DNA of 63,638 nt, filler included, from Reticulomyxa filosa (lineage: Eukaryota; Protista; Foraminifera), in assembly GCA_000512085.1 (NCBI GenBank). It is 19 parts of 19 records of this genome, joined end to end, with 100 filler letters (N's around TTAATTAATTAA, not from the genome) between each part and the next. Parts side by side here need not be neighbours in the genome. Positions count along the whole stretch, not along the records: positions 3,767 to 5,309 come from ASPP01018406.1; 18 more parts are not named here. One strand, written 5' to 3'. Positions 3,767 through 6,383 of the stretch are shown here, piece by piece. Numbering within the stretch: position 1 is the stretch's first letter; each line of letters starts with the position of its first letter. The translations under genes were made by a program, and so were the position numbers. The notes under the pieces were generated by a model. The model searched no databases and was not told where the DNA came from. It saw only the letters and a program-made list of their open reading frames with translations.

Positions 3767-4084
3767 ATCGTGAACTGCCTGTTCGCCGTCATCCTGGGCG
3801 GCGGTCTCGTGCTATTCAAGAAACCGCTGCTGAAGCCGCTGTTCGGCGCGGCTTTCAGGCTGACCGACGAGGGCTGGTATCAGCTCACGATGCGCTGGAC
3901 GGTGTTCTTCTTCGTCTTGGCCATCGTCAACGAAGTCATGTGGCGCAACTTCCCGACCGACACGTGGATCGCCAGCAAGATGTTCCTGAGCTTCCCGCTG
4001 ACGCTGGTCTTCGCCTTCCTGCAGATCCCGCTGCTCCGGCGCTACTGGGACGGCGACGACAATCCCTTCGCGCGCGGAAGCTGA
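3767..4084 (+). CDS. yciB: intracellular septation protein A / inner-membrane protein YciB, C-terminal part (bacterial)
   Basis: KPLLKPLFGAAFRLTDEGWYQLTMRWTVFFFVLAIVNEVMWRNFPTDTWIASKMF...LTLVFAFLQIPLL matches the IspZ/YciB C-terminus. Codon usage is GC-rich bacterial. Confidence 0.85.
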   Translation: MVNCLFAVILGGGLVLFKKPLLKPLFGAAFRLTDEGWYQLTMRWTVFFFVLAIVNEVMWRNFPTDTWIASKMFLSFPLTLVFAFLQIPLLRRYWDGDDNPFARGS

Positions 4085-4113
4085 GGTTATGAAGAGCGAC
4101 CGCCACCTGCTCT

Positions 4114-4194
4114 TGTCATCCTGAGCGAAGCGAAGGATCTCACGTTAGCCACGGAGTGCGCTGGTCGCTCAGCTCGGTCCTTCGCTGCGCTCAG
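4114..4194. repeat. REP-like extragenic palindrome with its right arm truncated by the IS
   Basis: Left arm TGTCATCCTGAGCGAAGCGAAGGATC (4114-4139) and right arm GGTCCTTCGCTGCGCTCAG (4176-4194) are complementary at 17 of 19 positions. The expected terminal GATGACA is replaced by IS sequence. Confidence 0.8.
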
Positions 4195-4211
4195 CAACCA
4201 TTAAGAATGCA

Positions 4212-5169
4212 CTATGCGGCGACGCGGCGAGATGAGATCCACGGGGTGCCGCGGGCGACGACGGCGTTGACCTGGATGAGCATCTTGCGCGCACAGGCGA
4301 TCATGATCTTACGATGGGGTTTGCCGGCGGTCTTCAGGCGTTGACTACAGCGCCTTGATGGCCGGATTCCAGCGGAAGGCGGCCGCGAGGCTGGCGGCAT
4401 AGAGCGCGCGACGCACCCGATCGCGGCCGCCGCCGATGCGGCTCTGACCTCTCCATTTGCCCGACTGCCGCACGAAGGGAGCCAGCCCCGCCAGGGAGAC
4501 GATCGGTTCACGCTCGAGACGCCCGAGTTCGGGCAGCAGCAGCAGCAGGCTGAGCGCGGTGCGCTCGCCGACCCCGTCGACGCTCTGGATCAGTTGCAGC
4601 CGGGCCAGCAGGTCAGGCTCGGCGGCGATGCTCTTCATCAGCAGGATCCGCTCTGCCGCCTCGCGCCGTTCCAGCCGCTCGACCTCCCGGCGCAGGAAGC
4701 GGCGCACATGCGCCAGATGCGCGGCCTCCAGGCGCGTCTTGGCCCGCACCACGTCGTCCTCCAGCTGCTCGATCAGCCGCAGATGCTCGGCAAGGGGAAC
4801 CAGCCGCGCATCCGAAGCCTCGTGCACCTTGTCGAGCAACGCCGCGCAGGTGGCGATCAGCGCCGCATCCAGCGGGTCACTCTTGGCCCGGCGCAGGCGG
4901 TATTGCGCGAACGCCCGGACCTGTAGGGGCTGCAATACCGCTACTTCGAAGCCGGCCTCGCGCAACGTGCCAGTCACTTCCTGCGAGTACGAACCGGTGG
5001 ATTCCAGACCGACCCGCACGACCTGCGCCGCGCGGAGCCATTGGATCAGCTGGCGGTGGCCGGCTGCACTGTTGTCGAACGCCATGCGGTCTGCCGCGCC
5101 GTGCAGCGCCACGTCCAGCCGCGCCTTGCCGATGTCGATCCCGGCTACGACCATGCTAACATCGCTCAT
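4212..5169 (-). pseudogene. IS110 DEDD recombinase/transposase, 318 aa if a single-base insertion at 4345 is removed
   Basis: GIDIGK (D), LESTG (E), AKSDPLDA (D,D), DGVG and LAGLAP..RQSG (catalytic Ser region). The C-terminus YQRLKTAGKPHRKIMIACARKML continues in the shifted frame (ORF 4212-4511). Confidence 0.9.
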
Positions 5170-5309
5170 CTTCGTCCATCCTGCCTCGTCTTCGAACCTG
5201 GAGTTCGGGCAACCATCCGGATCGGGTGAAGAGGCCGGCCGCGATCTTGCTGAGCTCATCCCCCAAAGGGATCAGACGACGTCGATCCGACGACCGGCCG
5301 CGCGGGCCC
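5169..5309 (-). ncRNA. predicted IS110 bridge RNA (target-binding loop about 5233-5299, donor-binding loop about 5169-5232), 5'-truncated
   Basis: Two stem/internal-loop/hairpin modules with identical spacing. Guide segments match the insertion target (CTGAGC; YGTCATCC with wobbles) and the IS right end (ATGGTTGC). Confidence 0.85.
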
Positions 5310-6383
5310 NNNNNNNNNNNNNNNNNNNNNNNNNNNNNNNNNNNNNNNNNNNNTTAATTAATTAANNNNNNNNNNNNNNNNNNNNNNNNNNNNNNNNNNN
5401 NNNNNNNNNCAATCATCTCTATAATGTGCCGTTTTAGGTGTCAACTTTACTTTATATTCTAATGTATATTGTTATGATGAATATTTTAAGTCTTTTTATT
5501 ATGCCCTTCAGAAACTCGACATCACGTAGATATAATTTTTTAAAAATGATAATAGTATCTCTTTTAGAATTTGAGAAAAACACGCTTCTTTATTTTGAAA
5601 CTTCGCCTTCAGTAGTGTAGAGAACCTGGAGCGGAAAAACACGTTTTAAGAAAGTAAGAAGGCGTTTTTGGAAATTAAATTAAAACGAAAACAACTTTGT
5701 TTATTTGGAGTCATACTGACTCCATTGTGACGTAAGTAGTCTCACTACAGTAGCTTGTAAAAAAAATAGGAAACCTAAAATGCTACTTTATTAAGATGAT
5801 TTTTTTTATTTGATATTTGTGATACAATTCAGCGTAAAATTGTTATGACAGCTAAAGACTCAAAAAGATTATTCAATGTCAGAAGTGAAATTAAAGTTTT
5901 TTATCAATAACTAGGATTTTGAAATTGAAAAGATGTCACTACATGCACAGGAAGTGATGAAATTTGTTATGTGTGAAAAAAAGGAGTACAAAGTTCTAGT
6001 GGTAGAGCGGTTATAGAAAGGCCAATGTTTGTGAGTGTAATATCACAGTTGGGAGTGCTTTGGTGCTAAAAGTGTTGGACTACTTGCAAAATTGGTATGC
6101 ATTAATTACCATTATACGAAATATTACCAAATGTGTCTATTTTTTTGAAACTACTGTAGTACGACGCGGAAAATTGATTTTGGAGGCAAACTTTAAACAT
6201 GACGCAATCAGGTTAAAAAAAATTAATCAAAATTAAGTAATATTTAATCTTATACGACAGAACAAGGATTGCCAGTTAGTGTCTTAAAAGAAAAAAAGTA
6301 CGTTTTTCCTTCTCATATGTATTTTTTTCTGCAAACTGTTCTTTATTTTGAGTTTATCCGAAAATCAAAATTATTCCTGTGCA

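Follow-up and report, generated by a model that had tools for sequence, protein, structure and literature searches.

A probable IS621-type bridge RNA in the left end of a frameshifted IS110-family element inserted into a REP-like palindrome

The closest described system to the element considered here is IS621 of E. coli, which combines a bridge RNA with a recombinase (Durrant et al. 2024, PMC11208160; Hiraizumi et al. 2024, PMC11208158; PDB 8wt6). There, the left guides of the RNA pair with the bottom strand of their substrates and the right guides with the top strand, both overlapping the core, and an rG:dT wobble is tolerated (PMC11208160); further, under the handshake rule the dinucleotide 3' of a right guide pairs with the non-cognate substrate at positions 6-7 (PMC11208158). 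RNA binding, the synaptic complex and guide reprogramming have all been described for this system (PMC11208160, PMC11208158, PMC13626964). ISCro4/IS622 (PDB 9t56; bioRxiv 10.1101/2025.05.14.653916) belongs to the same family and has the same architecture as the present element, but is a distant orthologue, one already engineered and put to the test in human cells. The ISPpu9 and ISPpu10 elements of Pseudomonas putida (PMC12288879, bioRxiv 10.64898/2026.03.19.712850) are likewise multi-copy IS110 elements occupying one position of a repeated extragenic palindrome, although, as compared by description, their host and target sequence differ. The IS1111 group with its seekRNA shares the recombinase superfamily and RNA-guided site choice; however, its RNA lies in the right end and its subterminal repeats are longer, as opposed to the left-end RNA and 17-nt right end seen here. 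Description of the class dates to 2024, and 'RNA-guided' already forms part of the NCBI name of the protein family.

The element lies in the window, i.e., the whole stretch of 63,638 nucleotides that was analysed, in a piece (3767-5309) that also includes a REP-like palindromic repeat and an ispZ/yciB-type septation gene, of which only the 3' end is present. It is an IS110-family element on the minus strand, where it reaches the piece edge, its other limit being at about 4193. On that strand, 5169-5309 is very probably the 3' 141 nt of a bridge RNA, some 180 nt long, that the left end of this element encodes, a degree of confidence that we attach to the explanation as a whole, namely the element, its bridge RNA, the guides and a mechanism drawn by analogy with IS621. 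The likeness to IS621 covers the encoding of the RNA in the left end, the order of its parts (5' hairpin, target loop, donor loop), guide polarity, the CT core, the handshake logic, a REP-type target, a recombinase with DEDD residues and a serine, a long left end paired with a very short right end, and RNA length (about 180 nt here versus 177 nt in IS621). On the other hand, the recombinase is distant, the primary sequence of the RNA is unrelated, and a small GNRA hairpin is added at the 5' end of the RNA. Additionally, the right donor guide here is an uninterrupted run of 8 nt, whereas IS621 pairs nine RNA bases discontiguously with seven donor bases; the left guides cover the first core base only; and, unlike IS621, the element here is known from sequence alone.

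A scan of species-representative genomes recovered seven copies of the element (L001-L007), all on one Reyranella MAG chromosome (NZ_OZ257251.1), together with relatives down to 33% identity, and a metagenome scan contributed 35 further loci; exact-protein look-ups of the truncated ORF of the window, in its 274-aa and 304-aa forms, matched no contig. All seven sister copies have 1182 bp in common and their divergence begins at identical points. The window holds the right-hand four-fifths of this 1182-bp IS110-group insertion sequence on its minus strand; the window piece ends inside the element, and the left junction is taken from the sister copies in the other genome. At that junction the sister copies read (C/T)GTC(G/A)TC-CT followed by CGTCTTAGCAAAAACGG, the element side starting with CGTCTT, and at the right junction they read TTAATGGTTG-CT, the element side ending in ATGGTTG, followed by GAGCG(A/C)AGCGAAGGA. 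The joined ends of an excised circle, i.e., the donor, would thus read ATGGTTG-CT-CGTCTT. A second contig from one sample (L057), with the same neighbouring genes as the filled locus and without the element, furnishes the empty site, ACGTCGTC-CT-GAGCGAAG, where CT occurs once and is followed by GAGCG, as against a CT at both junctions of the filled site. Together, the seven sister copies and the empty site define the target as (C/T)GTCGTC-CT-GAGCG and point to precise insertion at the CT core. In keeping with the site-specific insertion of the IS110 group, the core is present once in the empty site, and, also as in that group, long terminal inverted repeats are absent: the left end measures 206 nt and the right end, core excluded, 17 nt, and the donor sequence is flanked only by a 3-bp inverted repeat, TAA...TTA. 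The empty and filled loci (L057 3420-3560 and L058 3436-4727) represent two related strains in one sample with the element absent from or present at the same locus; their contig coverage compares as 64x versus 934x, and the empty-site strain also differs in the partner arm of the repeat.

In the window, the septation gene is represented by its C-terminal 104 residues (3770-4084, plus strand; Pfam IspA, E = 1e-25), the gene being cut by the piece edge, and some 110 bp separate its stop from the insertion downstream. Beyond ispZ lies a REP-like palindrome, and the element interrupts one of its arms. This repeat occupies 4113-4194 as a palindromic pair, TGTCATCCTGAGCGAAGCGAAGGATCTC on the plus strand and an imperfect inverse, cut by the insertion at 4194/4195. 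Its partner arm holds an intact target copy, GTCATC-CT-GAGC (4115-4126, plus strand), and in most loci the target is likewise one arm of a palindromic repeat whose partner arm keeps an intact target on the opposite strand. On the minus strand, the junction comparison places the 17-nt right non-coding end at 4195-4211, terminating in the left donor ATGGTTG (4195-4201), and, along with the empty site, the CT core dinucleotide of the right junction at 4193-4194; beyond it, the right target and the remainder of the interrupted repeat arm (GAGCGCAGCGAAGGACC) follow at 4176-4192, as seen in the sequence and the sister copies. The same repeat lies beside most sister copies; it is thus a dispersed extragenic repeat of the genome which serves as the natural landing pad of the element.

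The recombinase gene begins with an ATG at 5167-5169 (minus strand), and its ORF (4345-5169, minus strand) covers residues 1-274 up to a premature TAG at 4345-4347. The product matches the Pfam domains DEDD_Tnp_IS110 (PF01548) and Transposase_20 (PF02371), its intact form scores 161 bits against the NCBIfam model NF033542, 'IS110 family RNA-guided transposase' (cut-off 140), and full-length matches are obtained to the recombinases of IS621 (E = 1.8e-26 to structure 8wt6 and about 4e-26 by sequence) and ISCro4 (PDB 9t56; E = 3.4e-25). The DEDD residues D12, E56, D98 and D101 and the serine of the SG motif, S236, are all present and align with the catalytic motifs of IS621. These sequence features support its assignment as an IS110-family recombinase with a predicted N-terminal DEDD RuvC-like domain and a serine-bearing C-terminal Tnp domain; the 108 members of its protein cluster are all labelled just 'IS110 family transposase'. 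Relative to the seven intact copies, the coding part in the window shows seven substitutions and, at 4345 (minus strand), one additional base, a G when read in the sense direction. This 1-nt insertion causes a frameshift, which creates the TAG and removes the last 44 residues; the rest of the gene, i.e., the last 44 codons and the stop, is found out of frame at 4212-4344 (minus strand) by ORF comparison. The context of the extra base is not homopolymeric, and it may yet be an assembly error. With its recombinase broken, the copy in the window would at best be mobile in trans via another copy.

Turning to the RNA, a covariance model (R1) built from an alignment of ten left ends matches the window at 5167-5310 (minus strand) with 140.8 bits (E = 3e-34), and the bridge-RNA stretch of the window (5169-5309) is identical to that of the intact sister copies, including L001. 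In those copies the RNA runs about 35 nt further 5', which completes a 14-bp hairpin and brings in a small GNRA hairpin, such that the RNA encoded in the 206-nt left end has four parts: the GNRA hairpin, the 14-bp hairpin, the loop that binds the target and the one that binds the donor. The window retains the 3' half of the 14-bp 5' hairpin, SL1 (5300-5309, minus strand), whose partner strand lies beyond the piece and which reads GCGCGGGCCCGGATGG-CC-ATCCGGGCCCGCGC in the sister copies. Fold and alignment delimit the target-binding loop module at 5233-5299 (minus strand), with an outer stem pairing 5284-5299 with 5233-5246 and an inner hairpin at 5258-5272, and the donor-binding loop module at 5169-5232 (minus strand), with an outer stem pairing 5219-5225 with 5176-5181, a UCUUC/GAAGA extension and an inner hairpin at 5193-5207. 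The minimum free energy fold of the reverse complement of 5165-5309 recovers both two-sided internal loops. The sequence is G+C-rich and its single-sequence fold is no more stable than those of shuffles (z = 0.23), so that the lone sequence yields the pattern and not its significance, and the weight rests on the comparative data. A scan of Rfam release 15 with the window piece and the full RNA of L001 returned chance-level matches, none near a gathering score.

The first-pass annotation of this DNA had proposed an IS621-type bridge RNA upstream of an IS110 recombinase, and this placement is borne out by the family assignment of the protein, the guides and the comparative structure of the RNA. 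All strings and coordinates it gave are present in the sequence, as is the shared layout it described for the two modules (stem, 2, 8, 1, a 5-bp hairpin with a 5-nt loop, 2, 6, 3, stem); both modules also appear in the predicted fold and are conserved in the ten-sequence alignment. The extent it assigned, 5169-5309, is right in position, but the RNA is longer than this, its 5' hairpins being cut by the piece edge.

The four guides can be read individually on the minus strand. The left target guide, CGUCGUCUG (5273-5281), which includes the module 1 string CGTCGTCT (5274-5281) and the seven scored bases CGUCGUC (5275-5281), is same-sense with the left target (C/T)GTCGTC-C and hence would pair with the bottom strand. 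Across nine insertion sites it matches 7/7 positions in five, 6/7 in three and 5/7 in L004, whose site, GTCATC, adds one rG:dT wobble of the kind tolerated in IS621 (PMC11208160). The right target guide, GCUCAG (5250-5255), is the complement of the core plus right target, CT-GAGC, and CTGAGC, i.e., core plus right flank, is found at 4189-4194. In the donor loop, the left guide AUGGUUGCC (5208-5216) is same-sense too, its substrate being the right end ATGGTTG together with the first core base, and matches at 7/7 positions in all copies: its stretch AUGGUUGC (5209-5216) corresponds to ATGGTTG-C, and the DNA string there, ATGGTTGC, recurs at 4194-4201 as the right end plus the first core base. 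The right donor guide, AAGACGAG (5185-5192), is the complement of CT-CGTCTT, which comprises the core and the first six left-end bases of the element, as observed in the left ends of L001-L007, L009 and L023. In total, 29 guide positions are matched in the element of the window, and each of the four guides agrees with its substrate in the polarity known from IS621. The left guides match the first core base only, that of the target loop by a U-G wobble, and in the clade of the window the second core base is matched by neither of them. Further, the handshake dinucleotides are as the IS621 rule (PMC11208158) would have them: in the target loop, CA (5248-5249) is the complement of donor positions 6-7 (TG) and not of the cognate target TC, while in the donor loop the G of GC (5183-5184) pairs with target position 7 (C) and not with donor position 7 (G), such that both dinucleotides pair incompletely with their own substrate. 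Position 7 is invariant in the data set, and the handshake therefore represents consistency with that rule rather than co-variation.

The donor deduced in the first-pass annotation, ATGGTTG-CT-CGTC, agrees with the junctions of the seven sister copies, and its CGTC, which had been derived from the loop motif GACGAG alone, proved to be the real left end. GACGAG itself lies within AAGACGAG, the right donor guide being 8 nt rather than 6 nt long. Likewise, in the proposed target TGTCATC-CT-GAGC, the CT-GAGC half agrees with the sister junctions, whereas the usual left half is GTCGTC, an exact match to the guide; the two wobble pairs invoked for the left target hold for the GTCATC variant of the repeat only, the general target being matched exactly.

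The comparative evidence comes from the alignment of ten left ends, which belong to three clades (the Reyranella, Methylobacterium and Acetobacteraceae types) with 50-92% recombinase identity. When the loops are kept unpaired, pairing holds in 96.5% of cells and both sides have changed in 15 of the 49 pairs (helix 2, the 14-bp hairpin, having seven compensatory pairs), as against 32-51% paired cells and 2-4 doubly changed pairs in controls in which the partners were slid by 1-3 columns; none of 500 shuffles reached the observed pairing values. The alifold consensus consists of the GNRA hairpin, the 14-bp hairpin and the two loop modules. R1 also detects the same RNA directly upstream of recombinases with just 31-40% identity, e.g., in L014 and L015 (E = 6e-13) and in L016, L050 and L051 (about 1e-10). 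At the level of sequence comparison, it is thus confirmed that the stems keep their pairing via compensatory change across relatives of 33-92% identity.

The guides of these relatives change together with their flanks, as the first-pass annotation had anticipated for homologues, in about five independent events. The Reyranella and Methylobacterium recombinases are just 52% identical, and the two clades have in common the donor module, ATGGTTG-CT-CGTCTT with its contiguous 8-nt right donor guide; the donor and donor loop of the Methylobacterium clade are as in the clade of the window. Its left target guide is CCUCAUC with a left flank of CCTCATC, and its right guide GGCUCAG with a right flank of GAGCC; that is, as the guide goes from GUCGUC to CUCAUC between the clades, the left flank goes from GTCGTC to CTCATC alongside. 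Among close relatives in the third clade, CCUCAUC and CCUCACC guides track CCTCATC and CCTCACC flanks. L040 and L041 carry ACCUCAG with GAGGT where their relatives carry UCCUCAG with GAGGA. L031 is retargeted on both sides, with guides CAGGUCC/GGGAGAG at the site AAGGTCC-CT-CTCCC; it retains the left donor half of its clade, ACAGTCG-CT, with a slightly different left end (TGTATATC versus TGTAAGTC). Over 12 non-core positions, guides match their own targets at 10.4 positions on average and the targets of other types at 6.6, a cross value kept high by the many elements that aim at related, REP-like repeats, which is also why the independent events number only about five. Donor guides vary between clades as well, matching their own ends 7/7. 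In clade E (L014, L015) a UUCGU guide matches the flank TTCGT by eye; the scores from automatic extraction for the left target guide of this clade were in the wrong register and were disregarded. In a more distant clade the right donor guide is discontiguous, CUUA-GG-CAAG with CT-TG-TAAG, in agreement with what is reported for IS621 and as opposed to the contiguous version in the clade of the window.

An Acetobacteraceae relative with 52% identity (L011 2434-2790) has a right end of about 340 nt, versus 17 nt here, and ATGGTTG as its left donor, as in the window; between its right target and the guide just 4/7 positions match, which may reflect an off-target or half-match insertion. A metagenome copy (L022 1-80) carries unrelated sequence in place of both 5' hairpins with its loop modules intact, scoring 143 bits against R1 with a 20-position gap; truncation of its left end or a chimera in the contig may account for this. 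At L029 1033-1264, a plus-strand covariance-model match of 136 bits overlaps one of 35 bits on the minus strand, the latter probably arising from the palindromic 14-bp hairpin (compare L001 2789-2886). In a distant clade of 31-34% identity (L016, L044-L046 and L050-L052, with L016 coming from a Verrucomicrobia MAG), the right end reads ACAGTTGA-CT, and the right flanks, TGTCC, ACCGG, CCTAA, GCCGC and CCGGC, all differ, such that the right target is seemingly far less constrained there.

Older models of IS110 and IS1111 elements invoke subterminal repeats, and the guide-like matches could in principle be DNA-level repeats of this kind, read by the recombinase protein with no guide RNA involved. 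The 3-bp inverted repeat TAA...TTA around the donor and the inferred status of the transcript would accord with such a view. Nevertheless, two of the four matched sequences belong to the host target and not to the element, and they change along with the guides; compensatory changes in the stems constrain an RNA and not a duplex DNA; and the mixed polarity, with left matches in the same sense, right matches antisense and both overlapping the core, is the geometry of RNA-guided recognition (PMC11208160). We therefore regard protein-read repeats as very improbable. It is less probable still that the region is a structured 5' leader regulating translation of the recombinase, in which the start codon region is sequestered by the module 2 outer stem and the guide matches are incidental. 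The 3' strand of that stem (GGAUGGACGAAGAUG) does run into the ATG, and a dual role is possible; but a leader role would add to guiding and not supplant it, and an incidental origin cannot account for 29 matched positions together with the co-variation of the flanks in the relatives.

An equally slight chance attaches to the stretch being protein-coding, as an N-terminal extension of the recombinase from an in-frame ATG at 5259 that would give a 304-aa ORF. While 30 extra in-frame codons are indeed available in both the window and L001, the Pfam domain begins at residue 9 when counted from the ATG at 5169, the alignment with IS621 begins at that same point, and the variation is compensatory in the stems rather than codon-like; moreover, alignment gaps of 1 and 2 nt in the stretch rule out an in-frame 30-codon extension as coding. 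A guide-bearing bridge RNA thus remains much the most probable account of the region.

With respect to its expression, contigs from RNA libraries of sludge, soil and sediment carry parts of the element. Two short metatranscriptome contigs cover the bridge-RNA stretch alone (L001 2840-3005, 165 nt, and 2842-2983, 142 nt), being assembled and strandless with uninformative ends, and they may stem from library DNA, with starts in a perfect palindrome where assemblers break. Read placement showed no circle-junction joint; a two-piece contig in run X1, considered as a circle, was rejected as another insertion site beside a repeat. A promoter scan of the element found no sigma-70 consensus promoter in the integrated left end, and the candidate at the reconstructed circle junction, TTGCTC-17-TAGCCT, is weak (6/12 positions); the position of its TAnnnT hexamer is constant across reconstructed junctions in the clade of the window. 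As expected for a promoter rebuilt upon excision, the distant relatives L013, L031 and L014 show a clear TTGAC(C/T) -35 box in the right end. We therefore infer transcription of the bridge RNA with IS621 as the model.

By analogy with IS621, the RNA would be made and bound by a recombinase tetramer, bridging target and donor in a tetrameric synaptic complex. The donor loop, through AUGGUUGC and AAGACGAG, would read ATGGTTG-CT-CGTCTT, the joined ends of the excised circle, and strand exchange at the CT core would then insert the element with the shared CT as the sole duplication. On the same analogy, changes to the guides would be expected to redirect insertion, making the system reprogrammable.

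Searches of the literature found no paper naming this element or linking Reyranella with IS110. The mechanism, family-wide bridge RNAs and REP targeting are all published, and the element opens no new question in these respects. A more speculative reading, to which we give only a small chance, is that the clade represents a natural retargeting series, in which the donor module is kept while the target loop follows the repeat of each host, and that the frameshifted copy of the window persists non-autonomously, with other copies either moving it or drawing on its RNA. What the locus does offer is a bridge RNA whose guides are legible one by one in the raw sequence, to the point that an unseen element end was predicted correctly from the loop. 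Being compact (1182 bp) and multi-copy, with a defined target and donor, an empty site and retargeted relatives, the element is a well-documented candidate orthologue for bridge-recombinase work.
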